Origin: Auanema rhodensis
Taxonomy: Eukaryota; Animalia; Nematoda
Direction of reading: 5' to 3'
DNA length: 64,000 nucleotides
Assembly: GCA_964057225.1 (NCBI GenBank)
Contig: OZ059895.1
Span: forward strand, 12,586,001-12,650,000
A program made the position numbers and the translations under genes. Below, one piece after another: positions 13,678 through 38,660 of the stretch. The notes under the pieces were generated by a model, which saw nothing but the letters and a program-made list of their open reading frames with translations, did not search any database and had not been told where the DNA came from. Positions within the stretch are counted from its first letter, which is position 1; every line of letters starts with the position of its first letter.

Positions 13678-13796
13678 AGCTTACGGCACCCGGGATTCCC
13701 AAGCCGTCTCCGATCCAAGTACTAACCGGGCCCAACGTTGCTTGACTTGCCAGATCGGACGGGATGGCGTACTTTCAACGTGGTATGGTCGTAAGC
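13678..13796 (-). rRNA. 5S rRNA
   Basis: Full copy. Confidence 0.95.
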
Positions 13797-15004: not shown

Positions 15005-15123
15005 AGCTTACGGCACCCGGGATTCCCAAGCCGTCTCCGATCCAAGTACTAACCGGGCCCAACGTTGCTTGACTTGCCAGATCGGACGGGATGGCGTACT
15101 TTCAACGTGGTATGGTCGTAAGC
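15005..15123 (-). rRNA. 5S rRNA
   Basis: Full copy. Confidence 0.95.
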
Positions 15124-16730
15124 GAAAATACCTGATATTCAATGATTTACATACTTATCCTCGTTATTGTTTTTTTTCCAATTTCATGTTAGTTATGTAA
15201 TTTTCTACGTTACATCTAAATTCCTCGATGATATCAAATCTTATGAGCTCCAAATACAATAAATTAAAAAAGGTTTCACAGTTGTATAGTGTTTAAACAA
15301 TGTTTGTTTCAATAGGAAATAGATAGAAACAGTAAAGTTAAAATGAAGGTTCATAAACTACTGGTTTATAACTGTAATATAGAAATAAGATTGAAGATAT
15401 TTTGATGCCTTGGGTTGAGCTATCTAAGTAAAACTGCTGGAAAATTAAAAACATTTGTTACGGAAGAGATAAAATTGAAAATCAGCTGCATGGCGTACTT
15501 TCAACGTGGTATGGTCGTAAGCAAAAAAATCTGATATTCAATGATTTACATACTTATCCTCGTTATTGTTTTTTTTCCAATTTCATGTTAGTTATGTAAT
15601 TTTCTACGTTACATCTAAATTCCTCGATAATATCAAATCTTATGAGCTCCAAATACAATAAATTAAAAAAGGTTTCACAGTTGTATAGTGTTTGAACAAT
15701 GTTTGTTTCAATAGGAAATAGATAGAAACAGTAAAGTTAAAATGAAGGTTCATAAACTACTGGTTTATAACTGTAATATAGAAATAAGATTGAAGATATT
15801 TTGATGCCTTGGGTTGAGCTATCTAAGTAAAACTGCTGGAAAATTAAAAACATTTGTTACGGAAGAGATAAAATTGAAAATCAGCTGCATGGCGTACTTT
15901 CAACGTGGTATGGTCGTAAGCGAAAAAATCTGATATTCAATGATTTACATACTTATCCTCGTTATTGTTTTTTTTCCAATTTCATGTTAGTTATGTAATT
16001 TTCTACGTTACATCTAAATTCCTCGATGATATCAAATCTTATGAGCTCCAAATACAATAAATTAAAAAAGGTTTCACAGTTGTATAGTGTTTAAACAATG
16101 TTTGTTTCAATAGGAAATAGATAGAAACAGTAAAGTTAAAATGAAGGTTCATAAACTACTGGTTTATAACTGTAATATAGAAATAAGATTGAAGATATTT
16201 TGATGCCTTGGGTTGAGCTATCTAAGTAAAACTGCTGGAAAATTAAAAACATTTGTTACGGAAGAGATAAAATTGAAAATCAGCTGCATGGCGTACTTTC
16301 AACGTGGTATGGTCGTAAGCAAAAAAAACTGATATTCAATGATTTACATACTTATCCTCGTTATTGTTTTTTTTCCAATTTCATGTTAGTTATGTAATTT
16401 TCTACGTTACATCTAAATTCCTCGATGATATCAAATCTTATGAGCTCCAAATACAATAAATTAAAAAAGGTTTCACAGTTGTATAGTGTTTGAACAATGT
16501 TTGTTTCAATAGGAAATAGATAGAAACAGTAAAGTTAAGATGAAGGTTCATAAACTACTGGTTTATAACTGTAATATAGAAATAAGATTGAAGATATTTT
16601 GATGCCTTGGGTTGAGCTATCTAAGTAAAACTGCTGGAAAATTAAAAACATTTGTTACGGAAGAGATAAAATTGAAAATCAGCTGCATTGCGTACTTTCA
16701 ACGTGGTATGATCGTTAAAAAAAACTGAAA

Positions 16731-16849
16731 AGCTTACGGCACCCGGGATTCCCAAGCCGTCTCCGATCCAAGTACTAACCGGGCCCAACGTTGCTTGACT
16801 TGCCAGATCGGACGGGATGGCGTACTTTCAACGTGGTATGGTCGTAAGC
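16731..16849 (-). rRNA. 5S rRNA
   Basis: Full copy. Confidence 0.95.
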
Positions 16850-18057
16850 GAAAAAATCTGATATTCAATGATTTACATACTTATCCTCGTTATTGTTTTT
16901 TTTCCAATTTCATGTTAGTTATGTAATTTTCTACGTTACATCTAAATCCCTCGATGATATCAAATCTTATGAGATCCAAATACAATAAATTAAAAAAGGT
17001 TTCACAGTTGTATAGTGTTTAAACAATGTTTGTTTCAATAGGAAATAGATAGAAACAGTAAAGTTAAGATGAAGGTTCATAAACTACTGGTTTATAACTG
17101 TAATATAGAAATAAGATTGAAGATATTTTGATGCCTTGGGTTGAGCTATCTAAGTAAAACTGCTGGAAAATTAAAAACATTTGTTACGGAAGAGATAAAA
17201 TTGAAAATCAGCTGCATGGCGTACTTTCAACGTGGTATGGTCGTAAGCGAAAAAATCTGATATTCAATGATTTACATACTTATCCTCGTTATTGTTTTTT
17301 TTCCAATTTCATGTTAGTTATGTAATTTTCTACGTTACATCTAAATTCCTCGATGATATCAAATCTTATGAGCTCCAAATACAATAAATTAAAAAAGGTT
17401 TCACAGTTGTATAGTGTTTGAACAATGTTTGTTTCAATAGGAAATAGATAGAAACAGTAAAGTTAAGATGAAGGTTCATAAACTACTGGTTTATAACTGT
17501 AATATAGAAATAAGATTGAAGATATTTTGATGCCTTGGGTTGAGCTATCTAAGTAAAACTGCTGGAAAATTAAAAACATTTGTTACGGAATTGATAAAAT
17601 TGAAAATCAGCTGCATGGCGTACTTTCAACGTGGTATGGTCGTAAGCAAAAAAATCTGATATTCAATGATTTACATACTTATCCTCGTTATTGTTTTTTT
17701 TCCAATTTCATGTTAGTTATGTAATTTTCTACGTTACATCTAAATTCCTCGATGATATCAAATCTTATGAGCTCCAAATACAATAAATTAAAAAAGGTTT
17801 CACAGTTGTATAGTGTTTGAACAATGTTTGTTTCAATAGGAAATAGATAGAAACAGTAAAGTTAAGATGAAGGTTCATAAACTACTGGTTTATAACTGTA
17901 ATATAGAAATAAGATTGAAGATATTTTGATGCCTTGGGTTGAGCTATCTAAGTAAAACTGCTGGAAAATTAAAAACATTTGTTACGGAAGAGATAAAATT
18001 GAAAATCAGCTGCATTGCGTACTTTCAACGTGGTATGATCGTTAAAAAAAATTGAAA

Positions 18058-18176
18058 AGCTTACGGCACCCGGGATTCCCAAGCCGTCTCCGATCCAAGT
18101 ACTAACCGGGCCCAACGTTGCTTGACTTGCCAGATCGGACGGGATGGCGTACTTTCAACGTGGTATGGTCGTAAGC
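18058..18176 (-). rRNA. 5S rRNA
   Basis: Full copy. Confidence 0.95.
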
Positions 18177-18586
18177 GAAAATACCTGATATTCAATGATT
18201 TACATACTTATCCTCGTTATTGTTTTTTTTCCAATTTCATGTTAGTTATGTAATTTTCTACGTTACATCTAAATTCCTCGATGATATCAAATCTTATGAG
18301 CTCCAAATACAATAAATTAAAAAAGGTTTCACAGTTGTATAGTGTTTGAACAATGTTTGTTTCAATAGGAAATAGATAGAAACAGTAAAGTTAAGATGAA
18401 GGTTCATAAACTACTGGTTTATAACTGTAATATAGAAATAAGATTGAAGATATTTTGATGCCTTGGGTTGAGCTATCTAAGTAAAACTGCTGGAAAATTA
18501 AAAACATTTGTTACGGAAGAGATAAAATTGAAAATCAGCTGCATTGCGTACTTTCAACGTGGTATGATCGTTAAAAAAAACTGAAA

Positions 18587-18705
18587 AGCTTACGGCACCC
18601 GGGATTCCCAAGCCGTCTCCGATCCAAGTACTAACCGGGCCCAACGTTGCTTGACTTGCCAGATCGGACGGGATGGCGTACTTTCAACGTGGTATGGTCG
18701 TAAGC
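18587..18705 (-). rRNA. 5S rRNA
   Basis: Full copy. Confidence 0.95.
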
Positions 18706-19913
18706 GAAAAAATCTGATATTCAATGATTTACATACTTATCCTCGTTATTGTTTTTTTTCCAATTTCATGTTAGTTATGTAATTTTCTACGTTACATCTA
18801 AATCCCTCGATGATATCAAATCTTATGAGATCCAAATACAATAAATTAAAAAAGGTTTCACAGTTGTATAGTGTTTAAACAATGTTTGTTTCAATAGGAA
18901 ATAGATAGAAACAGTAAAGTTAAGATGAAGGTTCATAAACTACTGGTTTATAACTGTAATATAGAAATAAGATTGAAGATATTTTGATGCCTTGGGTTGA
19001 GCTATCTAAGTAAAACTGCTGGAAAATTAAAAACATTTGTTACGGAAGAGATAAAATTGAAAATCAGCTGCATGGCGTACTTTCAACGTGGTATGGTCGT
19101 AAGCGAAAAAATCTGATATTCAATGATTTACATACTTATCCTCGTTATTGTTTTTTTTCCAATTTCATGTTAGTTATGTAATTTTCTACGTTACATCTAA
19201 ATTCCTCGATGATATCAAATCTTATGAGCTCCAAATACAATAAATTAAAAAAGGTTTCACAGTTGTATAGTGTTTGAACAATGTTTGTTTCAATAGGAAA
19301 TAGATAGAAACAGTAAAGTTAAGATGAAGGTTCATAAACTACTGGTTTATAACTGTAATATAGAAATAAGATTGAAGATATTTTGATGCCTTGGGTTGAG
19401 CTATCTAAGTAAAACTGCTGGAAAATTAAAAACATTTGTTACGGAATTGATAAAATTGAAAATCAGCTGCATGGCGTACTTTCAACGTGGTATGGTCGTA
19501 AGCAAAAAAATCTGATATTCAATGATTTACATACTTATCCTCGTTATTGTTTTTTTTCCAATTTCATGTTAGTTATGTAATTTTCTACGTTACATCTAAA
19601 TTCCTCGATGATATCAAATCTTATGAGCTCCAAATACAATAAATTAAAAAAGGTTTCACAGTTGTATAGTGTTTGAACAATGTTTGTTTCAATAGGAAAT
19701 AGATAGAAACAGTAAAGTTAAGATGAAGGTTCATAAACTACTGGTTTATAACTGTAATATAGAAATAAGATTGAAGATATTTTGATGCCTTGGGTTGAGC
19801 TATCTAAGTAAAACTGCTGGAAAATTAAAAACATTTGTTACGGAAGAGATAAAATTGAAAATCAGCTGCATTGCGTACTTTCAACGTGGTATGATCGTTA
19901 AAAAAAATTGAAA

Positions 19914-20032
19914 AGCTTACGGCACCCGGGATTCCCAAGCCGTCTCCGATCCAAGTACTAACCGGGCCCAACGTTGCTTGACTTGCCAGATCGGACGGGA
20001 TGGCGTACTTTCAACGTGGTATGGTCGTAAGC
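19914..20032 (-). rRNA. 5S rRNA
   Basis: Full copy. Confidence 0.95.
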
Positions 20033-21240
20033 GAAAATACCTGATATTCAATGATTTACATACTTATCCTCGTTATTGTTTTTTTTCCAATTTCATGTTA
20101 GTTATGTAATTTTCTACGTTACATCTAAATTCCTCGATGATATCAAATCTTATGAGCTCCAAATACAATAAATTAAAAAAGGTTTCACAGTTGTATAGTG
20201 TTTAAACAATGTTTGTTTCAATAGGAAATAGATAGAAACAGTAAAGTTAAAATGAAGGTTCATAAACTACTGGTTTATAACTGTAATATAGAAATAAGAT
20301 TGAAGATATTTTGATGCCTTGGGTTGAGCTATCTAAGTAAAACTGCTGGAAAATTAAAAACATTTGTTACGGAAGAGATAAAATTGAAAATCAGCTGCAT
20401 GGCGTACTTTCAACGTGGTATGGTCGTAAGCGAAAAAATCTGATATTCAATGATTTACATACTTATCCTCGTTATTGTTTTTTTTCCAATTTCATGTTAG
20501 TTATGTAATTTTCTACGTTACATCTAAATCCCTCGATGATATCAAATCTTATGAGATCCAAATACAATAAATTAAAAAAGGTTTCACAGTTGTATAGTGT
20601 TTAAACAATGTTTGTTTCAATAGGAAATAGATAGAAACAGTAAAGTTAAGATGAAGGTTCATAAACTACTGGTTTATAACTGTAATATAGAAATAAGATT
20701 GAAGATATTTTGATGCCTTGGGTTGAGCTATCTAAGTAAAACTGCTGGAAAATTAAAAACATTTGTTACGGAAGAGATAAAATTGAAAATCAGCTGCATG
20801 GCGTACTTTCAACGTGGTATGGTCGTAAGCGAAAAAATCTGATATTCAATGATTTACATACTTATCCTCGTTATTGTTTTTTTTCCAATTTCATGTTAGT
20901 TATGTAATTTTCTACGTTACATCTAAATTCCTCGATGATATCAAATCTTATGAGCTCGAAATACAATAAATTAAAAAAGGTTTCACAGTTGTATAGTGTT
21001 TGAACAATGTTTGTTTCAATAGGAAATAGATAGAAACAGTAAAGTTAAGATGAAGGTTCATAAACTACTGGTTTATAACTGTAATATAGAAATAAGATTG
21101 AAGATATTTTGATGCCTTGGGTTGAGCTATCTAAGTAAAACTGCTGGAAAATTAAAAACATTTGTTACGGAATTGATAAAATTGAAAATCAGCTGCATTG
21201 CGTACTTTCAACGTGGTATGATCGTTAAAAAAAATTGAAA

Positions 21241-21359
21241 AGCTTACGGCACCCGGGATTCCCAAGCCGTCTCCGATCCAAGTACTAACCGGGCCCAACG
21301 TTGCTTGACTTGCCAGATCGGACGGGATGGCGTACTTTCAACGTGGTATGGTCGTAAGC
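21241..21359 (-). rRNA. 5S rRNA
   Basis: Full copy. Confidence 0.95.
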
Positions 21360-23366
21360 GAAAATACCTGATATTCAATGATTTACATACTTATCCTCGT
21401 TATTGTTTTTTTTCCAATTTCATGTTAGTTATGTAATTTTCTACGTTACATCTAAATTCCTCGATGATATCAAATCTTATGAGCTCCAAATACAATAAAT
21501 TAAAAAAGGTTTCACAGTTGTATAGTGTTTAAACAATGTTTGTTTCAATAGGAAATAGATAGAAACAGTAAAGTTAAAATGAAGGTTCATAAACTACTGG
21601 TTTATAACTGTAATATAGAAATAAGATTGAAGATATTTTGATGCCTTGGGTTGAGCTATCTAAGTAAAACTGCTGGAAAATTAAAAACATTTGTTACGGA
21701 AGAGATAAAATTGAAAATCAGCTGCATGGCGTACTTTCAACGTGGTATGGTCGTAAGCGAAAAAATCTGATATTCAATGATTTACATACTTATCCTCGTT
21801 ATTGTTTTTTTTCCAATTTCATGTTAGTTATGTAATTTTCTACGTTACATCTAAATTCCTCGATGATATCAAATCTTATGAGCTCCAAATACAATAAATT
21901 GAAAAAGGTTTCACAGTTGTATAGTGTTTGAACAATGTTTGTTTCAATAGGAAATAGATAGAAACAGTAAAGTTAAGATGAAGGTTCATAAACTACTGGT
22001 TTATAACTGTAATATAGAAATAAGATTGAAGATATTTTGATGCCTTGGGTTGAGCTATCTAAGTAAAACTGCTGGAAAATTAAAAACATTTGTTACGGAA
22101 GAGATAAAATTGAAAATCAGCTGCATGGCGTACTTTCAACGTGGTATGGTCGTAAGCGAAAAAATCTGATATTCAATGATTTACATACTTATCCTCGTTA
22201 TTGTTTTTTTTCCAATTTCATGTTAGTTATGTAATTTTCTACGTTACATCTAAATTCCTCGATGATATCAAATCTTATGAGCTCCAAATACAATAAATTA
22301 AAAAAGGTTTTACAGTTGTATAGTGTTTGAACAATGTTTGTTTCAATAGGAAATAGATAGAAACAGTAAAGTTAAAATGAAGGTTCATAAACTACTGGTT
22401 TATAACTGTAATATAGAAATAAGATTGAAGATATTTTGATGCCTTCGGTTGAGCTATCTAAGTAAAACTGCTGGAAAATTAAAAACATTTGTTACGGAAG
22501 AGATAAAATTGAAAATCAGCTGCATGGCGTACTTTCAACGTGGTATGGTCGTAAGCGAAAAAATCTGATATTCAATGATTTACATACTTATCCTCGTTAT
22601 TGTTTTTTTTCCAATTTCATGTTAGTTATGTAATTTTCTACGTTACATCTAAATTCCTCGATGATATCAAATCTTATGAGCTCCAAATACAATAAATTGA
22701 AAAAGGTTTCACAGTTGTATAGTGTTTGAACAATGTTTGTTTCAATAGGAAATAGATAGAAACAGTAAAGTTAAAATAAAGGTTCATAAACTACTGGTTT
22801 ATAACTGTAATATAGAAATAAGATTGAAGATATTTTGATGCCTTGGGTTGAGCTATCTAAGTAAAACTGCTGGAAAATTAAAAACATTTGTTACGGAAGA
22901 GATAAAATTGAAAATCAGCTGCATGGCGTACTTTCAACGTGGTATGGTCGTAAGCGAAAAAATCTGATATTCAATGATTTACATACTTATCCACGTTATT
23001 GTTTTTTTTCCAATTTCATGTTAGTTATGTAATTTTCTACGTTACATCTAAATTCCTCGATGATATCAAATCTTATGAGCTCCAAATACAATAAATTAAA
23101 AAAGGTTTCACAGTTGTATAGTGTTTGAACAATGTTTGTTTCAATAGGAAATAGATAGAAACAGTAAAGTTAAAATGAAGGTTCATAAACTACTGGTTTA
23201 TAACTGTAATATAGAAATAAGATTGAAGATATTTTGATGCCTTCGGTTGAGCTATCTAAGTAAAACTGCTGGAAAATTAAAAACATTTGTTACGGAAGAG
23301 ATAAAATTGAAAATCAGCTGCATTGCGTACTTTCAACGTGGTATGATCGTTAAAAAAAAATTGAAA

Positions 23367-23485
23367 AGCTTACGGCACCCGGGATTCCCAAGCCGTCTCC
23401 GTTCCAAGTACTAACCGGGCCCAACGTTGCTTGACTTGCCAGATCGGACGGGATGGCGTACTTTCAACGTGGTATGGTCGTAAGC
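23367..23485 (-). rRNA. 5S rRNA (variant, TTGGAACGG in the C-box region)
   Basis: Full copy, tccgttccaag instead of tccgatccaag. Confidence 0.9.
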
Positions 23486-24295
23486 GAAAATACCTGATAT
23501 TCAATGATTTACATACTTATCCTCGTTATTGTTTTTTTTTCCAATTTCATGTTAGTTATGTAATTTTCTACGTTACATCTAAATTCCTCGATGATATCAA
23601 ATCTTATGAGCTCCAAATACAATAAATTAAAAAAGGTTTCACAGTTGTATAGTGTTTAAACAATGTTTGTTTCAATAGGAAATAGAAAGAAACAGTAAAG
23701 TTAAGATGAAGGTTCATAAACTACTGGTTTATAACTGTAATATAGAAATAAGATTGAAGATATTTTGATGCCTTGGGTTGAGCTATCTAAGTAAAACTGC
23801 TGGAAAATTAAAAACATTTGTTACGGAAGAGATAAAATTGAAAATCAGCTGCATGGCGTACTTTCAACGTGGTATGGTCGTAAGCGAAAAAATCTGATAT
23901 TCAATGATTTACATACTTATCCTCGTTATTGTTTTTTTTCCAATTTCATGTTAGTTATGTGATTTTCTACGTTACATCTAAATCCCTCGATGATATCAAA
24001 TCTTATGAGATCCAAATACAATAAAATAAAAAAGGTTTCACAGTTGTATAGTGTTAAAACAATGTTTGTTTCAATAGGAAATAGATAGAAACAGTAAAGT
24101 TAAGATGAAGGTTCATAAACTACTGGTTTATAACTGTAATATAGAAATAAGATTGAAGATATTTTGATGCCTTGGGTTGAGCTATCTAAGTAAAACTGCT
24201 GGAAAATTAAAAACATTTGTTACGGAAGAGATAAAATTGAAAATCAGCTGCATTGCGTACTTTCAACGTGGTATGATCGTTAAAAAAATTTGAAA

Positions 24296-24414
24296 AGCTT
24301 ACGGCACCCGGGATTCCCAAGCCGTCTCCGATCCAAGTACTAACCGGGCCCAACGTTGCTTGACTTGCCAGATCGGACGGGATGGCGTACTTTCAACGTG
24401 GTATGGTCGTAAGC
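24296..24414 (-). rRNA. 5S rRNA
   Basis: Full copy. Confidence 0.95.
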
Positions 24415-24824
24415 GAAAATACCTGATATTCAATGATTTACATACTTATCCTCGTTATTGTTTTTTTTCCAATTTCATGTTAGTTATGTGATTTTCTACG
24501 TTACATCTAAATCCCTCGATGATATCAAATCTTATGAGATCCAAATACAATAAAATAAAAAAGGTTTCACAGTTGTATAGTGTTAAAACAATGTTTGTTT
24601 CAATAGGAAATAGATAGAAACAGTAAAGTTAAGATGAAGGTTCATAAACTACTGGTTTATAACTGTAATATAGAAATAAGATTGAAGATATTTTGATGCC
24701 TTGGGTTGAGCTATCTAAGTAAAACTGCTGGAAAATTAAAAACATTTGTTACGGAAGAGATAAAATTGAAAATCAGCTGCATTGCGTACTTTCAACGTGG
24801 TATGATCGTTAAAAAAATTTGAAA

Positions 24825-24943
24825 AGCTTACGGCACCCGGGATTCCCAAGCCGTCTCCGATCCAAGTACTAACCGGACCCAACGTTGCTTGACTTGCCAG
24901 ATCGGACGGGATGGCGTACTTTCAACGTGGTATGGTCGTAGGC
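24825..24943 (-). rRNA. 5S rRNA abutting the left TIR; first 3 nt (GCC) come from the transposon end
   Basis: ...tatggtcgta|ggcctttc; also a ggaccc SNP. Confidence 0.85.
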
Positions 24944-25415
24944 CTTTCTACAAGTACGGAGAAATGTATAGGCGGGATTGCGTACATACTACTTGTGCGG
25001 ACCGTTTGATACAAGTACGGGAAAATGAATAAATAGGATCGTGTACATATTACATCTACGGACTCTTTAATTACGTAGACAATCATTTTAAACACATACT
25101 ACTTTTACGGAATGTATAATTCCACTTAACTTTTGTTATGTTTCGATAGGTTTTTTAAACTCTAAATTCATATTTATATCAAACATTCTTTCTAACACAA
25201 TATTAAATTCAAAAATTTTGAATATATTAGTCACTGTCCTGTTGGTATGTATCGTTGATGTCTTTATCTTCAAAATCGAAAGATGATGCTGTTGTGGTAT
25301 AGCTTTAAGATGAAAACCCTGTTAAATAAGTTCAAACTTACTCTACCAGTCCTGCAAAGCGTCTGCTATAATTATTCTGACTGAACTGTTTTCCTTTACG
25401 TTTTCGAAATTTGGT
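24941..25415 (+). repeat. Left TIR (475 bp)
   Basis: ggcctttctacaagtacgg...ttttcgaaatttggt pairs with accaaatttcgaaaa...ccgtacttgtagaaaggcc. Confidence 0.95.
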
Positions 25416-25540
25416 AAAGAAAATGAACTATTATAATGGGTGGTCCTACTGGGTGGTCTGTCTTTTTCTCTGAAAAAGCTCCTTGTCTGTCTGTCGTGTT
25501 CTTTTTTTCGCCATATATTTTGGTGATGTTATCTCAAACA

Positions 25541-28392
25541 ATGAGTACCAAGTACTTCTCTCTTACGAAAGTTGTTGAATTGTTGAACTCAAAAAGGTAA
25601 GATGTTTCCTTATTTTTTTCATTCATTTTTCAAATTATTTATTATTGTAGTCAAAAGGATTCTTTGGAAGTATTTCCAAATTTAAAAGAAATGAAAGCAG
25701 GGAAACTAATTTTTACTGTGTCGAGGGAAAACATCAGTACTCTTGCTAGCATTACTCGTGATTGTTTTGCACCCTGGACCGGCAATTGTAACATAGCGAA
25801 TATGTGCTATACATATGTATATTTATTTATTTTGTTCCAGTCAATAATAAACGGTTCACTACCACCACAGATAAGGCATGTTTATATTATGAAGATGGGA
25901 AATTCTTGGAGAATGACAATGGAAGTAATATTATTTTAAAAATTTTTAGGAATGATCACCGAGAGTTTCCAGCTTTCTATAGAGAAGTGTGAAAACGTAT
26001 CTTAATAATAATATAAAAATAAAATTCAGATTTACTACGTATTGAACAATCAAGAGTTATTTTCAGATGTTCTTTACGTATATACTAGTGAGGTATTCAA
26101 TATTTAATAATTATTAATGCTTTGTTGTTATATCTTAAGTTCAATTTTACCATACCGGAAAGAAACGTTAAGAGAAGGCTTGATCCAGCAGACTCCGAAC
26201 ATGCAAAAGAAGTTCTAAAATTTAGAACCACCCGAGAAGCTCATAATATGCTTCAGGATGAAGGTATGACAATTTCCAGAAAAACAGTTAGTTTACTAAA
26301 AACGTTATTTAACTTTCTACTACTTTTAAGTTGAGCAGTTTAAGCCGTAGCGTTAAAGACCATGTTAAAACCCGTCAGGGTAGAAAAAGTCCAATTGATT
26401 TTTATTCAATTATGGATAGATATTTAGCTCAGATACACCCTGAAGAAAAATTAGATAAGCCTATTATAGAAAAACATGGTATTTTTCTTTGCAGATCGTA
26501 CCGAAATTTAAGATTTATATTTGAAGTCGATGGTTCTTTGAAAGTTCGAGTACTTATTGGTTATCCTGTAGCAGTAACCTGTTTTTCACGTGCCCTTCCG
26601 ACTAAAGAAGATTTAGAAAATCATCACATAGCAGTAAAAAAGTTGAATTTTATGGACAAAGAAGATCGAGACAATTATTTCGGTTAGCTCTTCTAAATTT
26701 ATTGTCATTTTATAATAGTCTTATAGCTTCATTTCTTTCAACAACAAACGAAAGTGGAAGTTTACCAGTTGTAGGATCATGTGTCATGATAGACACAACA
26801 TTCTCGCTTTGTACATCTGAATATGTCACTCTCGTGTTAGGTGTTAGTGAAACTTTCAAGTTAGTGGCTGATCAAAATCTAATTAAACATTAATTACTAG
26901 ATCGCGTACATCCGGGAAAAGTTCATCATTGCTTCTAGCTCTTATGATTCATTCTCGTAAAGAAAATGAGGATCACGAAAATTTTAGTCACTTTCTTAAT
27001 TCATTGTTTAAAGAGTATGGAAATGACAGAACCGTAGGATTATTAGTCCACGACGGTGAAAGCAGTTTTAGTAATTACAATACGGTATTGTCAAGAGAGA
27101 GCTTATAAAAAAAATATTTTTAGGGTTCCTACTTCAAAGATGCATTATTGATTCGCTGCGATTTACATAGGATAGATAATTTGAAAGATGTTCTGAAGGA
27201 CGACGTGTATGACTTTGAAACAGTTAAAATAGCATTGTGGGGCGAGAAAAAAACAGTATTATATTTTGAAGAAAAATAAATAAAACCAAGTTTTTCAGAG
27301 AAACGGAAATCAGGTTCTCAAAAGAGGTATTCTTGATTCGTTAAATAAAACAGAATTTTCACAAAGCATGATCAGATATATTTCTTCTTTGAACGATGGG
27401 AAGCTTAAATCTTGGTTTACTTTTACTTTTTATCATGTTGACGTTCATTTACTTAGGCTCACATCAAATTTTGATAATTTGTTTACATTTAACAGTATGT
27501 TCTCAAAATTGTTAGCTGGATGGCCGGTTCAGTTTTTGTCCTCGAATATCATTGAAGCAAAAAATGCTCATATAAAAATGTTGATTGATCATAAAAAACC
27601 AGCGCAAAAAATACTTGACGATTTTTTGCGATGCCATAAAGGTAAGATAACAATGATAATTCATCTAACTTACCCGTTTAGAGGAAATCCAGGAATGTGT
27701 TCGAGCAATCACGGGAGTACCTTCAAAACTTCTAACCGGAAATTCTTTCACCGCCTATGAATGGGCAAACATGAGCATATCAAAAAAAAGAGAAGTGTTC
27801 ACTATATTTGGTTTACAAAGTCTAATGCCAGGAGATATTCTCGAAAACGTTCCTAGTTTTCTACTACCGGGTATTTTTCTGATATAATATATGATATGAA
27901 TTAATTAAAAGTTATAGCTGGTAAAAATAACAGAGAAAATGTAATTCAATCCGTGGCAAACTTAACAGTTAAATCGGTGGACAATTGTTTTTTTCTTCTG
28001 AACAGGGAAAGAAAATTTGAGTTAGTTATAATATTCAATATTCACTTGTAGTGTTAACAGATGTTCTTACGCAACTCTCGATGATGATGAACTAGTTTGT
28101 TTTCACTTTTCTTGCAAGAAAAAGTCTTTGAGGCTATGCATTCATCTGTAAAACTATCTCCAATTATTTTCATTGTTCCGAAAACTTTAGGATAGCTGTA
28201 TACATATTCATGGAGCCCATTCAAAAAGAAAAAGTTCTGAAGAAAAGGCAAGAAAAAATTAACGAAATTTCTTGTGTTAATCTTATGAGAATTCAAATGC
28301 ATCCCAGTAACGGAACCAAATTTCGAAAACGTAAAGGAAAACAGTTCAGTCAGAATAATTATAGCAGACGCTTTGCAGGACTGGTAGAGTAA
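25541..28392 (+). CDS. Multi-exon MULE-type DDE transposase (exon model partly manual)
   Basis: Candidate ATG at 25541, first intron aaaag|gtaag...ttgtag. Manual splicing across ~40-55-bp GT-AG introns gives ...CVMIDTTFSLCTSEYVT (D at 26792)...LMIHSRKENEDHENF...LLVHDGESSF (D at 27052)...LIRCDLHRIDN (CxxH at 27157-27168)...SSNIIEAKNAHIK (E at 27554). This matches the MULE order D-x-T-F / D-x-E / CxxH / N-x-x-E-S/A-x-N. The last ORF piece, 28210-28392, is basic (KFRKRKGK). 3' exon boundaries are uncertain. Confidence 0.78.
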
Positions 28393-28789
28393 GTTTGAAC
28401 TTATTTAACAGGGTTTTCATCTTAAAGCTATAGCACAACAGCATCATCTTTCGATTTTGAAGATAAGGACATCAACGATACATACCAACAGGACAGTGAC
28501 TAATATATTCAAAATTTTTGAATTTAATATTGTGTTAGAAAGAATGTTTGATATAAATATGAATTTAGAGTTTAAAAAACCTATCGAAACATAACAAAAG
28601 TTAAGTGGAATTATACATTCCGTAAAAGTAGTATGTGTTCAAAATGATTGTCTACGTAATTAAAGAGTCCGTAGATGTAATATGTACACGATCCTATTTA
28701 TTCATTTTCCCGTACTTGTATCAAACGGTCCGCACAAGTAGTATGTACGCAATCCCGCCTATACATTTCTCCGTACTTGTAGAAAGGCC
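28315..28789 (-). repeat. Right TIR (475 bp)
   Basis: Reverse complement of the left TIR. Confidence 0.95.
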
Positions 28790-28905
28790 TACGACCATAC
28801 CACGTTGAAAGTACGCCATCCCGTCCGATCTGGCAAGTCAAGCAACGTTGGGCCCGGTTAGTACTTGGATCGGAGACGGCTTGGGAATCCCGGGTGCCGT
28901 AAGCT
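28787..28905 (+). rRNA. 5S rRNA abutting the right TIR; starts GCCTACGACC
   Basis: agaaaggcc|tacgaccatac...gtaagctttt. Confidence 0.85.
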
Positions 28906-29315
28906 TTTCAAATTTTTTTAACGATCATACCACGTTGAAAGTACGCAATGCAGCTGATTTTCAATTTTATCTCTTCCGTAACAAATGTTTTTAATTTTCC
29001 AGCAGTTTTACTTAGATAGCTCAACCCAAGGCATCAAAATATCTTCAATCTTATTTCTATATTACAGTTATAAACCAGTAGTTTATGAACCTTCATCTTA
29101 ACTTTACTGTTTCTATCTATTTCCTATTGAAACAAACATTGTTTTAACACTATACAACTGTGAAACCTTTTTTATTTTATTGTATTTGGATCTCATAAGA
29201 TTTGATATCATCGAGGGATTTAGATGTAACGTAGAAAATTACATAACTAACATGAAATTGGAAAAAAAACAATAACGAGGATAAGTATGTAAATCATTGA
29301 ATATCAGGTATTTTC

Positions 29316-29434
29316 GCTTACGACCATACCACGTTGAAAGTACGCCATCCCGTCCGATCTGGCAAGTCAAGCAACGTTGGGCCCGGTTAGTACTTGGATC
29401 GGAGACGGCTTGGGAATCCCGGGTGCCGTAAGCT
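29316..29434 (+). rRNA. 5S rRNA
   Basis: Full copy. Confidence 0.95.
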
Positions 29435-30243
29435 TTTCAAATTTTTTTAACGATCATACCACGTTGAAAGTACGCAATGCAGCTGATTTTCAATTTTATC
29501 TCTTCCGTAACAAATGTTTTTAATTTTCCAGCAGTTTTACTTAGATAGCTCAACCCAAGGCATCAAAATATCTTCAATCTTATTTCTATATTACAGTTAT
29601 AAACCAGTAGTTTATGAACCTTCATCTTAACTTTACTGTTTCTATCTATTTCCTATTGAAACAAACATTGTTCAAACACTATACAACTGTGAAACCTTTT
29701 TTAATTTATTGTATTTGGAGCTCATAAGATTTGATATTATCGAGGAATTTAGATGTAACGTAGAAAATTACATAACTAACATGAAATTGGAAAAAAAACA
29801 ATAACGAGGATAAGTATGTAAATCATTGAATATCAGAATTTTTCGCTTACGACCATACCACGTTGAAAGTACGCCATGCAGCTGATTTTCAATTTTATCT
29901 CTTCCGTAACAAATGTTTTTAATTTTCCAGCAGTTTTACTTAGATAGCTCAACCCAAGGCATCAAAATATCTTCAATCTTATTTCTATATTACAGTTATA
30001 AACCAGTAGTTTATGAACCTTCATCTTAACTTTACTGTTTCTATCTATTTCCTATTGAAACAAACATTGTTTTAACACTATACAACTGTGAAACCTTTTT
30101 TAATTTATTGTATTTGGATCTCATAAGATTTGATATCATCGAGGGATTTAGATGTAACGTAGAAAATTACATAACTAACATGAAATTGGAAAAAAAACAA
30201 TAACGAGGATAAGTATGTAAATCATTGAATATCAGGTATTTTC

Positions 30244-30362
30244 GCTTACGACCATACCACGTTGAAAGTACGCCATCCCGTCCGATCTGGCAAGTCAAGC
30301 AACGTTGGGCCCGGTTAGTACTTGGATCGGAGACGGCTTGGGAATCCCGGGTGCCGTAAGCT
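30244..30362 (+). rRNA. 5S rRNA
   Basis: Full copy. Confidence 0.95.
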
Positions 30363-31171
30363 TTTCAAATTTTTTTAACGATCATACCACGTTGAAAGTA
30401 CGCAATGCAGCTGATTTTCAATTTTATCTCTTCCGTAACAAATGTTTTTAATTTTCCAGCAGTTTTACTTAGATAGCTCAACCCAAGGCATCAAAATATC
30501 TTCAATCTTATTTCTATATTACAGTTATAAACCAGTAGTTTATGAACCTTCATCTTAACTTTACTGTTTCTATCTATTTCCTATTGAAACAAACATTGTT
30601 TTAACACTATACAACTGTGAAACCTTTTTTAATTTATTGTATTTGGAGCTCATAAGATTTGATATCATCGAGGAATTTAGATGTAACGTAGAAAATTACA
30701 TAACTAACATGAAATTGAAAAAAAAACAATAACGAGGATAAGTATGTAAATCATTGAATATCAGATTTTTTCGCTCACGACCATACCACGTTGAAAGTAC
30801 GCCATGCAGCTGATTTTCAATTTTATCTCTTCCGTAACAAATGTTTTTAATTTTCCAGCAGTTTTACTTAGATAGCTCAACCCAAGGCATCAAAATATCT
30901 TCAATCTTATTTCTATATTACAGTTATAAACCAGTAGTTTATGAACCTTCATCTTAACTTTACTGTTTCTATCTATTTCCTATTGAAACAAACATTGTTT
31001 TAACACTATACAACTGTGAAACCTTTTTTAATTTATTGTATTTGGATCTCATAAGATTTGATATCATCGAGGGATTTAGATGTAACGTAGAAAATTACAT
31101 AACTAACATGAAATTGGAAAAAAAACAATAACGAGGATAAGTATGTAAATCATTGAATATCAGGTATTTTC

Positions 31172-31290
31172 GCTTACGACCATACCACGTTGAAAGTACG
31201 CCATCCCGTCCGATCTGGCAAGTCAAGCAACGTTGGGCCCGGTTAGTACTTGGATCGGAGACGGCTTGGGAATCCCGGGTGCCGTAAGCT
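31172..31290 (+). rRNA. 5S rRNA
   Basis: Full copy. Confidence 0.95.
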
Positions 31291-32498
31291 TTTCAAATTT
31301 TTTTAACGATCATACCACGTTGAAAGTACGCCATGCAGCTGATTTTCAATTTTATCTCTTCCGTAACAAATGTTTTTAATTTTCCAGCAGTTTTACTTAG
31401 ATAGCTCAACCCAAGGCATCAAAATATCTTCAATCTTATTTCTATATTACAGTTATAAACCAGTAGTTTATGAACCTTCATCTTAACTTTACTGTTTCTA
31501 TCTATTTCCTATTGAAACAAACATTGTTTTAACACTATACAACTGTGAAACCTTTTTTAATTTATTGTATTTGGAGCTCATAAGATTTGATATCATCGAG
31601 GAATTTAGATGTAACGTAGAAAATTACATAACTAACATGAAATTGAAAAAAAAACAATAACGAGGATAAGTATGTAAATCATTGAATATCAGATTTTTTC
31701 GCTCACGACCATACCACGTTGAAAGTACGCCATGCAGCTGATTTTCAATTTTATCTCTTCCGTAACAAATGTTTTTAATTTTCCAGCAGTTTTACTTAGA
31801 TAGCTCAACCCAAGGCATCAAAATATCTTCAATCTTATTTCTATATTACAGTTATAAACCAGTAGTTTATGAACCTTCATCTTAACTTTACTGTTTCTAT
31901 CTATTTCCTATTGAAACAAACATTGTTTTAACACTATACAACTGTGAAACCTTTTTTAATTTATTGTATTTGGAGCTCATAAGATTTGATATCATCGAGG
32001 AATTTAGATGTAACGTAGAAAATTACATAACTAACATGAAATTGAAAAAAAAACAATAACGAGGATAAGTATGTAAATCATTGAATATCAGATTTTTTCG
32101 CTCACGATCATACCACGTTGAAAGTACGCCATGCAGCTGATTTTCAATTTTATCTCTTCCGTAACAAATGTTTTTAATTTTCCAGCAGTTTTACTTAGAT
32201 AGCTCAACCCAAGGCATCAAAATATCTTCAATCTTATTTCTATATTACAGTTATAAACCAGTAGTTTATGAACCTTCATCTTAACTTTACTGTTTCTATC
32301 TATTTCCTATTGAAACAAACATTGTTTTAACACTATACAACTGTGAAACCTTTTTTATTTTATTGTATTTGGATCTCATAAGATTTGATATCATCGAGGG
32401 ATTTAGATGTAACGTAGAAAATTACATAACTAACATGAAATTGGAAAAAAAACAATAACGAGGATAAGTATGTAAATCATTGAATATCAGGTATTTTC

Positions 32499-32617
32499 GC
32501 TTACGACCATACCACGTTGAAAGTACGCCATCCCGTCCGATCTGGCAAGTCAAGCAACGTTGGGCCCGGTTAGTACTTGGATCGGAGACGGCTTGGGAAT
32601 CCCGGGTGCCGTAAGCT
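32499..32617 (+). rRNA. 5S rRNA
   Basis: Full copy. Confidence 0.95.
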
Positions 32618-33771
32618 TTTCAAATTTTTTTAACGATCATACCACGTTGAAAGTACGCAATGCAGCTGATTTTCAATTTTATCTCTTCCGTAACAAATGT
32701 TTTTAATTTTCCAGCAGTTTTACTTAGATAGCTCAACCCAAGGCATCAAAATATCTTCAATCTTATTTCTATATTACAGTTATAAACCAGTAGTTTATGA
32801 ACCTTCATCTTAACTTTACTGTTTCTATCTATTTCCTATTGAAACAAACATTGTTTTAACACTATACAACTGTGAAACCTTTTTTAATTCATTGTATTTG
32901 GAGCTCATAAGATTTGATATCATCGAGGAATTTAGATGTAACGTAGAAAATTACATAACTAACATGAAATTGAAAAAAAAACAATAACGAGGATAAGTAT
33001 GTAAATCATTGAATATCAGATTTTTTCGCTCACGACCATACCACGTTGAAAGTACGCCATGCAGCTGATTTTCAATGTTATCTCTTCCGTAACAAATGTT
33101 TTTAATTTTCCAGCAGTTTTACTTAGATAGCTCAACCCAAGGCATCAAAATATCTTCAATCTTATTTCTATATTACAGTTATAAACCAGTAGTTTATGAA
33201 ACTTCATCTTAACTTTACTGTTTCTATCTATTTCCTATTGAAACAAACATTGTTTTAACACTATACAACTGTGAAACCTTTTTTAATTTATTGTATTTGG
33301 AGCTCATAAGATTTGATATCATCGAGGAATTTAGATGTAACGTAGAAAATTACATAACTAACATGAAATTGAAAAAAAAACAATAACGAGGATAAGTATG
33401 TAAATCATTGAATATCAGATTTTTTCGCTCACGACCATACCACGTTGAAAGTACGCCATGCAGCTGATTTTCAATTTTATCTCTTCCGTAACAAATGTTT
33501 TTAATTTTCCAGCAGTTTTACTTAGATAGCTCAACCCAAGGCATCAAAATATCTTCAATCTTATTTCTATATTACAGTTATAAACCAGTAGTTTATGAAC
33601 CTTCATCTTAACTTTACTGTTTCTATCTATTTCCTATTGAAACAAACATTGTTTTAACACTATACAACTGTGAAACCTTTTTTATTTTATTGTATTTGGA
33701 TCTCATAAGATTTGATATCATTGAGGGATTTAGATGTAACGTAGAAAATCACATAACTAACATGAAATTGG

Positions 33772-34260
33772 TGTTACATACATATCTCAAAGGAAAGCAG
33801 CTGACCATGGCAGCTGCTATTATAAAACTAATGCAGATAGTTTTTAAGCAATTCTGAGAATATTCTAGATGCACTTTTTATAAGCTTTGTAACAATTTGT
33901 GTAAACTGAGTAGGAGTTGTATGGATATATAAACCTGAGTCCTCAAGACTCAGGCATCTCATTATCTCATTATCTTACTTTCTCTTTATCTTCTTTATAT
34001 TCTCTTTCTTAACTCTAGCTTTAATCTTTGTATAATTATATTATAATGCGAACAATAAACCTTTATATATTTCATCTCTTGTTTCTTATTTCACCTTACA
34101 TTACACACTTATATTCAAAATCATACTCATCTTCTCATAGTCTGTTTGGATCTCTCAACTTGGAACCATTGGGAATCCAAATGGAACGTGGAGGTTCCAC
34201 CGAGATCCTTCCTTTCGGACAGGATCTCGTAAAGGAACTCAAGCGCTACCGTCTACAACT
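33772..34260 (+). promoter_or_regulatory. Putative 5' LTR of element A (3' end not determinable)
   Basis: TG start, TATATAAA at ~33926, AATAAA at ~34054. There is no second copy and no recognisable PBS, so the end coordinate is a guess. Confidence 0.45.
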
Positions 34261-35360
34261 CTTATTCATTTAAAAATCTTATCTCTCTCTTAAAGTTAGC
34301 TTATAATTCATTTTCAATTATTCATAAGAGTACTTATATCATTTATCATTCTCTCTATCCAAAATCCTATATACGAAAATTATTCAAATTCAATAATTAA
34401 CTTTTCTAAGAATTATAAGTTTATTTTCACATTTTTTGAACAAAAATAGTTAAGTTCTTTATAAAATTAATTTAGAATTAAGAAATAAAAAGAAATATTG
34501 CTTCTATACCTCTCAATCTTAATCATCTTATCATATTATCTGAATCTTCATCTTATCATACTATCTTAATCATCCTATCATACCATATTTTCATTATTTT
34601 CTTTATGTTTAAAACTATTATTCTTATGCTACTACACTGTATTCTCATAAACCCACCCCTTCCCCCCCCCCCCCCCCCGTAATTTCATAAGCAAGAAATC
34701 CCGTGTTAAACACGACAGTAAAAATATTTATTAGGCGCAGCGTATCCAAATTCCGATTACCTTAGCACCTGAAAAAAAAAACGAAAAATAATTAAACTAA
34801 TCAATAAGTTTTAACTCATACGCAAAAACCATCCCCCCCCTCGTTAAGAATAATGCCAGACACTCAAGAGACTCGAGCGGAGGCCGACACTCAGGATAAG
34901 ACGTACGCCCCATGAAATAATTAGAGAATTTTTGAATTAAAATCTGCCCCACATTGATATAAATAATAAGAGTGGTCTCGCCATCATAGAGTCAGGGAGC
35001 AGGATGCAGAAGGCAGCTGACATACCTGTGACTCAGATAGGTTAATGAGGTCTGGGAAAATGAAATGATTGCGAAAATTCTATTTTGTATCCTTGTCCCA
35101 AAAGACTGGCGAACTATTAACTTTCATTTCATGCCTTTTTCACAATATAGAACTTGTCCCTTCGAAAAGGCACACTAGTTTCAAACCTGTGTTAGACCCG
35201 GACGAGCTATATTGGTAAAGAGATTACTTGCAAGACTAGCTACCTTCATAAGAATCGCGCACACAAACCCAACATTATTCTTTACGTTTTTTTTATATAC
35301 ATATATAAAATTATTTTGGCACACGTTGGATATAACAAATTTCCTTACAGGATACCAACG

Positions 35361-38300
35361 ATGCTGCCCAATACTGGTCCAAAACCTCCGCTGGACCCTG
35401 CTGCCACTTCAAATATTATAAGAAGAAAAAGACAACCGCCCGCAACATATTCTCCCCCCTCTGCAAAACAAGCGAAGTTAAGCATTAAAACAAAGTCAAT
35501 GGTAATACATACCCCAAGACATCGCGACATTCAAAAACAATTCACCAATCCCAAATCACATGAAAAAACGAAGAAACAAAAAACAGACATAGTCGAAAGA
35601 AACACCTTAGAAAAGAAAATTATCCCAAACATTAAACCTATTCCTAAAAATATAGCAAGCAAAGGGAACCCTCAAAACCCCCCAACCAACACCATACCAA
35701 ATACAATCAACCCAATCAATCCTTTAATAGCCACCCCTAGAAGAAGCAATACACCAACCACACAAAAATCACCTACGCCCGCACTTTCTTCAACCACACC
35801 CGCAGTAAGCTCATCCCCACCTTTACGAAACTCACCTTCATCCATTGATCATTCTACATCTGGGCATTCTTCATCTCCGTCTCTTCCATCGCAAACTAAT
35901 CAAGCAAATACTTTTGTTGCAGAAAACAAAAGAATTAACCCAAGAATGGACCCAATGGACGAAGGCGCACCACTTACGCAAACCTCGGGAAGGGCACCTG
36001 TTCCAACACCTACAATCATCCCTCAACCAGCAGCGATTCCGTCCGCCATACGCGATATAAAAGCTCCACGCTACGATGGAAAAACACCATTCAACCGCTA
36101 TCTACTATACCTAGACGAACACTTCAACGCTACAAGAACAACTATGCCCGAACGTCTTCAAAGCATACAATTATTGCTAGAAGATGATCGAGCAAGAGAA
36201 GCGTACAGAAAACTCACAACCGAAGATAAGCGACTTGGATGGGACCATGTCAAGAAGCGACTCTCAGAAATGATCACACCGAAAAAACAGAGAGAACGAG
36301 CAATGCACCGCCTACATGGCTTGAAACAGTTACCAACGGAATCGGTACAAAGCTTTGCAACAAGATGTTCTAACGAAGCCTACTCGGCTATGGACATGAA
36401 CAACGAAAGTGAGCTTAACATGCTCCGATCCACCTTCACCTGGGGACTAAGACCCGAAATAAGCGAACATGTTAGCCGTCTAGACCCACCAAACTTTGAG
36501 GAAGCTTACGAAATGGCCTTACGAGAAGAACTCTTTATACAAAATAGACCACCATCGTTCGTCAACAATATGGAGAAGTCGTTCAACAACCTCAACATTC
36601 GAGACTCAAAGGACAACAATCAATACCAGAGAAACGAATCTAAGGAATTCAAAGGAACCAAACCGATGTATAATGGCAATGGCAAACCACACAACCGATA
36701 TCCGGACAGATACAACAACCAATATCGGCCTCATCAACACCAATACAGGAACCATAACTCACGATTCTCTCAAAATAAGGGATCAAGACAAAACTACTTC
36801 GACAGATCACGGAACAGAAGCCAAGAAAGACCATACTATCGAAACCGCGACCAAAACTATAGCGGACACAACAACCGGCGACAATCAAATAATCACGAAC
36901 AATACCCCTCTCAATACAATCGAAGCCAATACAACAATTATAGAAGTCGCCCGCGCAGCACCTCCAATGGACCGGAACGGTATAGAGAACGCACACAGAG
37001 CCCAGGAGTACGTTTTCAAGTCAACAACGTCACGGAAAACGAAGTACCGAACAACAAAAGAAAATCAACACCATTCCTACCCCTCTTTATCACAATTATC
37101 GCACTCATTATAAACACATGCAGTGCAGAAACAACGTACCAGTTATGCACAGGAAACAGAGGAGGAATATATGTCGAGCCGCCATCTCCAACAGCTTGCC
37201 GATTCATCGCACCAACTAATAACCATATCCAGAAGACTACAGCAGAATTGTTCATCCAAAACCTACAACCAAAAGAATGGGAAGCATGGAAATGTGCAAT
37301 TGAAACTTACCAACTCTGCATTCACGACGTTTTCTTCATCAGAGAAACTAATGTCTCACTAGCAAAAGTTTCACCAACAACACTGCAAGAATGTTCGTCA
37401 GCTATTAAAGAAAGAATATTCAACGGTACCAACCTTCAAAGAGAAGCACCAGGACTCTATGGAACTCCATTCCCACATACAACTATTACTAATGGTATAT
37501 GGAAACAGGAATGCGAACAACGTACCAGATTCATAGCTGAAAGAGGACACATGACCAGCCTACAAGACAATACAGTACTCTCAGATATATTCATAAACGA
37601 CAACGGATGCACCAGTGACAAAGGACAATGCCTAACCAACAACGCTCTCATCATATGGACCCCACCATTAGAAAAACATAGTTGCTCGTACACTTCATTA
37701 GGCTCTCACGAAGTTTTTATATCAGAAGACACCATATTGATTCCCGGAATTCAAAGTGCTTTTATTCTAAACAATAAAACACCGGAAAAAGAAGCCTCCT
37801 CATGCTTACAAAAAGATATATTTACTACAAATAGTGGAACTCTAATCTCCTTCAACTCAACCTCAAGCTTAGGACGATCAAGAAGACACGCAATCACGGA
37901 ATACCCTAAAGGATTCTTGACAGTTCATCAATACCCCTCGCTAAGATATTCAGCCAGCAAAACTGGAACTATTCTACTATATACAACCTATATTCAACGA
38001 AAAAGACTTGACATACATTACAATCTCAATAACATAACAAATATGTTACCTAAGTATATCGCAATCTTCAAATACCTAGGTATAAATTTTGATGTTATCA
38101 AAAATCGTCTTATATGGCACAAATATGAAGACGTCAACATAGCCATTCTACACGCCCTAGGAGAAGCAGAAATAAGAGAAGCAACAAAAATCGCGATCGA
38201 TAATCTATCGTATAAGGAACTTACGCAAAAACTTAGCAAACGGATCACAATTAAGGATTTTAAGAAGATACTACCAACCAAAACAGGAGACTACTATGAA

Positions 38301-38660
38301 ATCGCGAAAGAAATTGCTTACTCACTTGCGGAAATACCTACTACATTAGCTACAGGAGAAACAACACCATCTTTAGAAGAATACTTATATCAACTTATGC
38401 CACCAAGAAAACCAAGACTCACCAAGACACGAAACGATTTAGAACTGTACGAACAACTAGCACAAGCAAAAATTATCCTGAACGCAATAAATAATCCGAA
38501 GAAGCTACATTCAAAAGAAGAATACGAAGCAGAAATGAAGAAATGGATCAAATATGAAAAAGAACTAAACTTACCACCATTACAACTGCCAAACTACACA
38601 GTTATCTTCGATGGCGACGAGATATTCTACGGCTTCCGGAAAAGAAATCCTACATTATAG
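35361..38660 (+). CDS. Gag-Env(N-terminal) polyprotein: P/S/T-rich N-terminus, capsid-like domain, N/R/S/Y-rich NC-like region, internal signal peptide, Cys-rich glycoprotein ectodomain
   Basis: ORF 35316-38660, first ATG at 35361. Gag motifs PRYDGK, LKQLPTESVQSF, FTWGLRPEI and NFEEAYEMALREE. Signal KRKSTPFLPLFITIIALIINTCSA at ~37056-37127, many Cys and NxS/T sites, furin-like RSRR at 37875-37886. Confidence 0.85.
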   Translation: MLPNTGPKPPLDPAATSNIIRRKRQPPATYSPPSAKQAKLSIKTKSMVIHTPRHRDIQKQFTNPKSHEKTKKQKTDIVERNTLEKKIIPNIKPIPKNIASKGNPQNPPTNTIPNTINPINPLIATPRRSNTPTTQKSPTPALSSTTPAVSSSPPLRNSPSSIDHSTSGHSSSPSLPSQTNQANTFVAENKRINPRMDPMDEGAPLTQTSGRAPVPTPTIIPQPAAIPSAIRDIKAPRYDGKTPFNRYLLYLDEHFNATRTTMPERLQSIQLLLEDDRAREAYRKLTTEDKRLGWDHVKKRLSEMITPKKQRERAMHRLHGLKQLPTESVQSFATRCSNEAYSAMDMNNESELNMLRSTFTWGLRPEISEHVSRLDPPNFEEAYEMALREELFIQNRPPSFVNNMEKSFNNLNIRDSKDNNQYQRNESKEFKGTKPMYNGNGKPHNRYPDRYNNQYRPHQHQYRNHNSRFSQNKGSRQNYFDRSRNRSQERPYYRNRDQNYSGHNNRRQSNNHEQYPSQYNRSQYNNYRSRPRSTSNGPERYRERTQSPGVRFQVNNVTENEVPNNKRKSTPFLPLFITIIALIINTCSAETTYQLCTGNRGGIYVEPPSPTACRFIAPTNNHIQKTTAELFIQNLQPKEWEAWKCAIETYQLCIHDVFFIRETNVSLAKVSPTTLQECSSAIKERIFNGTNLQREAPGLYGTPFPHTTITNGIWKQECEQRTRFIAERGHMTSLQDNTVLSDIFINDNGCTSDKGQCLTNNALIIWTPPLEKHSCSYTSLGSHEVFISEDTILIPGIQSAFILNNKTPEKEASSCLQKDIFTTNSGTLISFNSTSSLGRSRRHAITEYPKGFLTVHQYPSLRYSASKTGTILLYTTYIQRKRLDIHYNLNNITNMLPKYIAIFKYLGINFDVIKNRLIWHKYEDVNIAILHALGEAEIREATKIAIDNLSYKELTQKLSKRITIKDFKKILPTKTGDYYEIAKEIAYSLAEIPTTLATGETTPSLEEYLYQLMPPRKPRLTKTRNDLELYEQLAQAKIILNAINNPKKLHSKEEYEAEMKKWIKYEKELNLPPLQLPNYTVIFDGDEIFYGFRKRNPTL

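Follow-up and report, generated by a model that had tools for sequence, protein, structure and literature searches.

The window analysed here, the whole 64-kb stretch C3:12586001-12650000 of the 181-Mb eukaryotic assembly of the rhabditid nematode Auanema rhodensis, contains a DNA transposon (called e1 throughout) whose two terminal inverted repeats (TIRs) are each joined to the same base, +4, of a 5S gene. Our preferred reading, to which we assign a probability of roughly 0.55, is that e1 belongs to a Mutator lineage that targets genes that RNA polymerase III (Pol III) transcribes, and that this copy joins two 5S blocks of opposite orientation after a second event at the same site. What is shown is the anatomy of e1, the target site duplication (TSD) of a second copy found in a tRNA gene, a census of 20 end junctions and the fold class of the transposase; the tethering of the transposase and the route to the mirrored flanks are proposed on that basis.

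Anatomy of e1 and its second copy

The element and the genes at its two junctions are laid out as follows.

24941..28789, plus strand: element e1, DNA transposon with termini GGCC...GGCC, 3849 bp, limits taken from the second copy
24941..25415, plus strand: left TIR, 475 bp, with subterminal ACAAGTA(CGG) repeats
28315..28789, minus strand: right TIR, 475 bp, 3 mismatches to the left TIR
24825..24940, minus strand: left junction 5S gene, bases +4 to +119; the Rfam call extends 3 nt into the TIR tip
28790..28905, plus strand: right junction 5S gene, bases +4 to +119

e1 is a young DNA transposon, apparently intact and probably autonomous. Its TIRs differ at positions 150, 323 and 357 counted from the tip (99.4% identity), close to the value of about 99% given in an earlier note on this DNA. 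The junctions read ...ggtcgta/GGCC on the left and GGCC/tacgacc on the right, exactly as that note had it: a normal 5S gene starts with GCTTACGACC, both junction genes read GCCTACGACC, 5S homology begins at base +4 on both sides of e1 (insertion point +3/+4), and the two genes face away from the element. Rfam calls both junction genes full length (100.1 and 103.5 bits; normal copies reach 107.5), since GCC at the tip of the TIR resembles the GCT of 5S. The tip (24941-24943 and 28787-28789) stands in for 5S bases +1 to +3, and the genes score as complete with a T3C change; transcription from their internal promoter might persist.

Neither a TSD nor an upstream 5S flank was present at the window copy, in agreement with the earlier description. 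The whole assembly was searched for a canonical upstream-side junction and for a third copy, and neither was found. The assembly holds exactly four ends of the e1 family, so the window copy is left without a canonical upstream-side junction.

The sole other copy of e1 in the assembly lies at C6:9986841-9990689 and differs from e1 at 13 of 3849 positions (99.66% identity). It is inserted in a tRNA-Gly-GCC gene of a tandem array, with tRNA genes of the same array on both sides, and is flanked by a perfect 9-bp TSD, CCACCGATG, corresponding to tRNA bases +2 to +10. The TSD directly abuts GGCC on one side of the element and TACC on the opposite side; being flush, it confirms the limits of e1 and establishes the length of the duplication, which is the 9 bp anticipated for a Mutator-like element (MULE). 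The TIRs of this copy are 98.7% identical to each other. One of its ends (positions 5340-5346 of locus L002) reads GGTA, the remaining three family ends reading GGCC, and these two adjacent tip changes might impair that end.

With its only other copy in tRNA-Gly, the targeting of e1 is not specific to 5S, and strict 5S specificity, considered as a candidate explanation, was ruled out. The earlier proposal of a 5S-targeting element therefore has to be restated: no repeated GGCC/TACGACC junctions exist, the other copy being outside 5S and yet inside a small-RNA gene, and it is small-RNA-gene targeting that stands.

Junctions of e1 and related families with tRNA and 5S genes

The exon of e1 that carries the catalytic E (27296..27646) was used as query for paralogues and matched at about 150 genomic positions, which fall into several diverged families. 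Families with 34-60% identity to e1 in this exon are called e1-like. For each copy, the downstream end was read within the fetched loci, and element limits were set by comparing copies with one another or with uninserted genes. The junctions with Pol III genes were the following.

e1 in the window: 5S +4, both ends
Second copy, C6: tRNA-Gly +2
Three tandem 4-kb units, C7: tRNA-Arg-ACG +3/4
L021, e1-like: 5S +6
L026, e1-like: 5S -1
L036, e1-like: tRNA-Arg -6
L031, e1-like: tRNA stub +1 to +11
L023, listed among the e1-like copies: 5S about +79
Distant-family copy (n=1): tRNA-Arg +30
Distant-family copy: tRNA-Arg stub that ends at +38/39; its 9-bp site is that of the +30 copy, in opposite orientation
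Distant-family copy: tRNA-Arg +42
Distant-family copy: tRNA-Gly-TCC stub ending at +47
Distant-family copies (n=2): 3' parts of tRNA genes
Distant-family copies: 5S +72 and about +67

Of 20 independent end junctions, from about eight related families, 14 are within tRNA or 5S genes or at their start (P = 2e-9 even at a Pol III gene density of 12%, the value of this unusually dense window). Full 5S genes, 1884 in number, make up only 0.12% of the genome. e1 and related families target small-RNA genes. Seven e1-like junctions fall at -6, -1, +2, +3, +3/4, +4 and +6 (range given: -6 to +7), and the 5S, tRNA-Gly and tRNA-Arg targets of these families have no common sequence at the insertion site; one and the same family used TACGACCAT and CATCGGTGG. 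Because these sites have no sequence in common and all fall from -6 to +7 relative to the gene start, we infer guidance by position, not by a DNA word, and by analogy with Ty3 the transposase may be guided through the Pol III initiation complex. The two more distant families have a common end, ...CTTGTCAGTTTGCC.

Could the same distribution arise with no targeting at all, by random insertion followed by survival only in redundant, harmless tRNA and 5S arrays? Such arrays abound in the genome, and six of the 20 junctions, three of them from one young family, lie outside recognisable Pol III genes. The junctions sit, however, in gene bodies of 70-120 bp and not in the spacers, which are far longer in these arrays, so that survival in harmless DNA fails as an explanation. 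The e1-like families moreover cluster within 13 bp around +1, tRNA-Arg was entered at the same base by two families, and the P value given above holds even at array density. We consider this account very improbable. The six outside junctions nevertheless weigh against the preferred reading, as do two features of the sample: each related family contributes one (downstream) end, the only complete insertion with a TSD being n=1, and precision to the same base within 5S is seen at one locus, that of e1. The three exceptions from the young family have tRNA genes 70-270 bp away. End-motif searches for three low-copy families returned no further copies, and the end motif of family C/D matched right ends only, so that its ends could not be paired into TSDs.

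Two loci recovered with the E exon have structures of their own. At C7:10176500-10187700 (L032-L034), three tandem 4-kb units each consist of a related element and a tRNA-Arg-ACG gene joined at +3/4, with downstream flanks that are about 100% identical; either the insertion and its target were amplified as one, or three genes of the array were entered alike. At C4:18462000-18566000 (L003, L022, L045 and L046), a satellite of about 100 kb carries in each repeat a piece of the E exon of 22-25 codons, giving more than 100 matches at 63-77% identity. It adjoins scrambled DNA copies (78-84%) of the element and a tRNA-Arg-TCG array and has the look of a satellite that arose from a piece of a transposon.

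The mirrored 5S arms and the proposed joining of two blocks

The window is AT-rich (34% G+C) and comprises, according to Rfam, a 5S ribosomal DNA (rDNA) array and long tRNA arrays. Its 5S sequence and its short introns are, in our judgement, of nematode type. The 5S arms on the two sides of e1 are made up as follows.

1..24940, minus strand: left 5S array of 529-bp full units and 399-bp units, extending beyond the window
28790..33771, plus strand: right 5S array, 10 units, stopping inside a spacer
24058..24940, minus strand: inner left flank, mirror of 28790-29672, with 2 mismatches in 883 bp
28790..29672, plus strand: inner right flank, mirror of 24058-24940
33772..40050, plus strand: retroelement fragment starting TGTTACAT, which bounds the right arm and is cut off by a tRNA array near 40050

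All 5S genes from 1 to 24943 lie on the minus strand and the five from 28787 to 32617 on the plus strand. In the 399-bp units the gene is deleted internally, from +32 into a downstream partial 5S copy. Counted outward from e1, unit lengths are 529, 529, 400, 530 and 399 on the left and 529, 529, 399, 529 and 399 on the right; the mirror thus spans five units, one more than the earlier note had described, and the order diverges at unit 6. By our estimate, the chance that four unit types match is about 0.1, about one third of the units being full length.

The mirror in length is matched by a mirror in sequence for only about one unit. Beyond the first 883 bp outward, the identity between the arms drops to about 98%, a value usual for any two units. 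Starting 1.6 kb out, the right arm shares 99.3-99.7% identity with units of the left array 16-25 kb away, compared with 98.5% for its mirror partners, which excludes the recent inverted duplication of four or five units that the mirrored lengths had suggested. Past its first unit, the right arm resembles the distal-left units and a plus-strand array at C3:12.855 Mb. A spacer type defined by 386T/402T/428G occurs in only L01, L02 and R01 among 23 full units, and a 34-mer of this type has 13 sites in the genome, 10 of them in the window and 3 in a plus-strand array 240 kb away. The likeness of the innermost unit could be due to arm-to-arm conversion in the palindrome anchored by the TIRs or to fold-back copying over a short distance. 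In every viable model a plus-strand 5S block pre-existed on the right.

In the reading we prefer, the 9-bp staggered cut of e1-like elements falls in the first dozen bases of the target gene, and e1 first inserted at 5S +3/+4. Its original upstream-side flank would later have been exchanged for the body side of an opposite-facing 5S gene cut at the same preferred base. The exchange may have come about by one-ended or alternative transposition of a cleaved end into the opposite-facing gene or by recombination between two same-site insertions. The outcome would be the joining of two pre-existing 5S blocks of opposite orientation, after which gene conversion from arm to arm, seeded by the 475-bp TIRs, would have homogenised the innermost unit. 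Two observations speak against this sequence of events: a reciprocal head-to-head junction of 5S stubs was searched for in the assembly and not found, and no further copy exists beyond the one on C6. The join of minus-strand 5S, element and plus-strand 5S is taken as it stands in the assembly.

The main biological rival is a TIR-primed fold-back copy of about one unit. Here a single insertion would have been followed by a break or fork stall, the right TIR would have paired with the left TIR of its own strand, priming an exact inverted copy of the left flank, and this copy would then have recombined into the plus-strand array. Such a copy would place the same nucleotide at both ends without any site precision. 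It would also fit the 2 differences in the inner 883 bp, which approximate the divergence between the two element copies, and the restriction of one spacer type to L01, L02 and R01 among the full units. The copy cannot, however, have been longer than about one unit, since identity is no more than 98% in units 2-5 and the unit order no longer agrees at unit 6; a pre-existing plus-strand array is still required; and the TIR mismatches at 150, 323 and 357 show no erased outer tract. On balance we regard a fold-back copy as unlikely.

An artefact of assembly would have to take the form of a turn-round across the 475-bp TIR, or of a join of two haplotypes or loci through the element, followed by a slide into a real plus-strand array. 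Its premise is that, across the TIR, reverse-complement reads of a single real junction look like a right-end junction. Mis-joins are classic in tandem arrays of the rDNA type, nowhere does the assembly contain the true upstream-side junction, and the special likeness of the arms ends after about one unit, where reads might have been switched. Yet the arms differ at 3 positions in the TIRs and 2 in the flanks, and being non-identical they must have been read from two distinct templates. The locus furthermore lies inside a multi-megabase contig and not at its end, the right arm runs on into unique DNA, and the 3.85-kb element is well below the length of long reads. An artefact is in our view rather unlikely.

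A bolder version of the preferred reading holds that this Mutator lineage independently evolved a Ty3-like tethering to the Pol III initiation complex, that any 5S or tRNA gene may be cut by it within about 7 bases of its start, that the tip GCC rebuilds a near-native 5' end and lets the gene still be read as complete, and that the transposase flips or fuses blocks of the array through one-ended events at the same site. We put this forward tentatively, as a possibility with the odds against it.

Further features of the arrays were noted in the window. The 5S array has a higher-order unit pattern, commonly 529+399+399 = 1327 bp, and in every full unit a 5' fragment of 5S directly follows the terminator. 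The retroelement fragment begins 54 nt upstream of the next expected 5S gene start. Two tandem tRNA arrays follow, one at 40266-53984 (56 copies of 82-nt genes at a spacing of 248 bp) and one at 54957-56980 (9 copies of 72-nt genes at a spacing of 244 bp), some copies having lower Rfam scores.

Class of the transposase and comparison with known systems

The transposase gene and the exons that carry its catalytic motifs were located in open frames.

25541..28151, plus strand: transposase gene, at least 11 short exons, ends approximate
26735..26860, plus strand: exon with the first catalytic D (VMIDTTF), 60% identity to P0001
26893..27081, plus strand: exon with the second catalytic D (LLVHDGES)
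27124..27252, plus strand: exon with the CxxH signature (RCDLH)
27296..27646, plus strand: exon with the catalytic E (SSNIIEAKN), the query for paralogues

The closest protein is P0001 (629 aa) from Auanema sp. JU1783. The exons of e1 are collinear with its residues 31-594, with 37-60% identity in the exons from residue 176 onward, and stop codons are confined to introns across the gene. Read by eye in the exons and in P0001, the motifs DxTF, HDGE, RCDLH and NIIEAKN show the spacing of Mutator transposases, with CxxH after the second D and a short distance from D to E; the order and spacing of D, D, CxxH and E are typical of Mutator/IS256 transposases. Together with the 99.66% identity of the second copy, the open exons and these D/D/E motifs uphold the earlier view of a recent, intact-looking element of the Mutator kind. 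The C/DxxH transposase signature itself has been described previously (PMC3706591).

The match to the Pfam MULE domain PF10551 to which the earlier note had looked did not materialise. The domain was not found when the transposase of e1 was scanned exon by exon (ten pieces), a genome-wide scan recovered another MULE family and nothing at the e1 locus, and P0001 and its Caenorhabditis relatives gave no match even at E 10. These negatives weigh against a Mutator assignment, and so does the middling mean predicted local distance difference test (pLDDT) value, 57, of the AlphaFold2 model, in which block means are mostly 60-97 at residues 320-590. No other transposase family in Pfam matched the ten exon pieces, a word-based protein search with P0001 returned only itself, and a PDB sequence search gave no match.

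Comparisons at a remote level point to the Mutator type. In ESM-Atlas, the clusters closest by features and by structure bear PF10551, SWIM or ZSWIM1-3, and a neighbour from a MULE cluster reached a template modelling (TM) score of 0.83 by target across 269 residues. With the AlphaFold2 model as query, the top three PDB matches in Foldseek were ISCth4 of the IS256 family (probability 0.97-1.0); the hAT transposase Hermes scored only 0.2 in the same search. Despite the failed Pfam test for MULEs, we file e1 as a putative, very divergent element of the Mutator/IS256 kind because of its motifs, ESM-Atlas neighbours, modelled fold, 9-bp TSD and long TIRs. Towards its N-terminus the transposase has a DUF7747 match just below threshold (24.1 versus 25 bits; window 25688-25989, P0001 residues 39-131), and this region is a candidate DNA- or target-binding domain, a role that is putative.

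The targeting of multicopy Pol III genes is a well-known 'safe haven' strategy of retroelements, used by Ty1, Ty3 and, in Dictyostelium, TRE5 and DGLT-A. Among DNA transposons we know of it only for Dada, and a literature search found no Mutator-type element that targets Pol III genes. If our reading is true, a second, unrelated superfamily of DNA transposons occupies the Pol III niche, a case of convergent evolution, and the e1 lineage uses a window close to the start site in place of a sequence word. The mirrored junction would then show a way in which elements of this type may join 5S rDNA blocks or turn them round, and a compact transposase with simple TIRs might be of use for studying or borrowing targeted integration.

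Dada elements are DDE cut-and-paste transposons, with Dada-5S and tRNA-targeting families known (Kojima and Jurka 2013, PMC3706591; PMC8869645); they have a TSD of 6-7 bp, no TIRs (short subterminal inverted repeats only) and DxxH (PMC3706591). Both Dada and the e1 lineage insert inside multicopy small-RNA genes (14 of 20 junctions for the latter), and the tRNA sites of Dada, close to the 5' part or the A box as well as around the anticodon, are a further likeness. Chimeric flanks comparable to those of the e1 locus are frequent in Dada, and were ascribed by the authors to one-ended transposition (PMC3706591). Unlike Dada, e1 has a 9-bp TSD, 475-bp TIRs, CxxH and MULE/IS256 neighbours, and its family uses unrelated sites (5S +4 and tRNA-Gly +2), whereas Dada is thought to read primary sequence. 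The separation of e1 from Dada is made on the published descriptions of Dada, which counts against our reading.

With MULEs and IS256-ISCth4, e1 has in common the 9-bp TSD, the long TIRs, the D-D-CxxH-E layout and the fold match to ISCth4. It departs from MULEs in lacking a PF10551 match and in having a DUF7747 match, just below threshold, at the N-terminus in place of a domain of the WRKY, FLYWCH or FAR1 type. The preference of plant Mu elements for the 5' ends of genes is a further likeness. The targets of e1 are Pol III genes, a preference that turned up in none of the MULE papers searched. Alternative, one-ended or reversed-ends transposition, as of Ac/Ds in maize, leaves mismatched flanks and inversions or deletions. 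The e1 locus differs from these cases in having no reciprocal product and a single junction pair, and would resemble them in that one end was joined to a new target and the other stayed put. Ty3, finally, is a long terminal repeat (LTR) retrotransposon of yeast whose integrase is tethered by TFIIIB. In contrast to Ty3, e1 is a DNA transposon for which tethering is only inferred, and its distant relatives insert in the middle of genes; in function, however, Ty3 and the e1-like families are alike, inserting within a few bases of the Pol III start, in tRNA and 5S genes, whatever the sequence.

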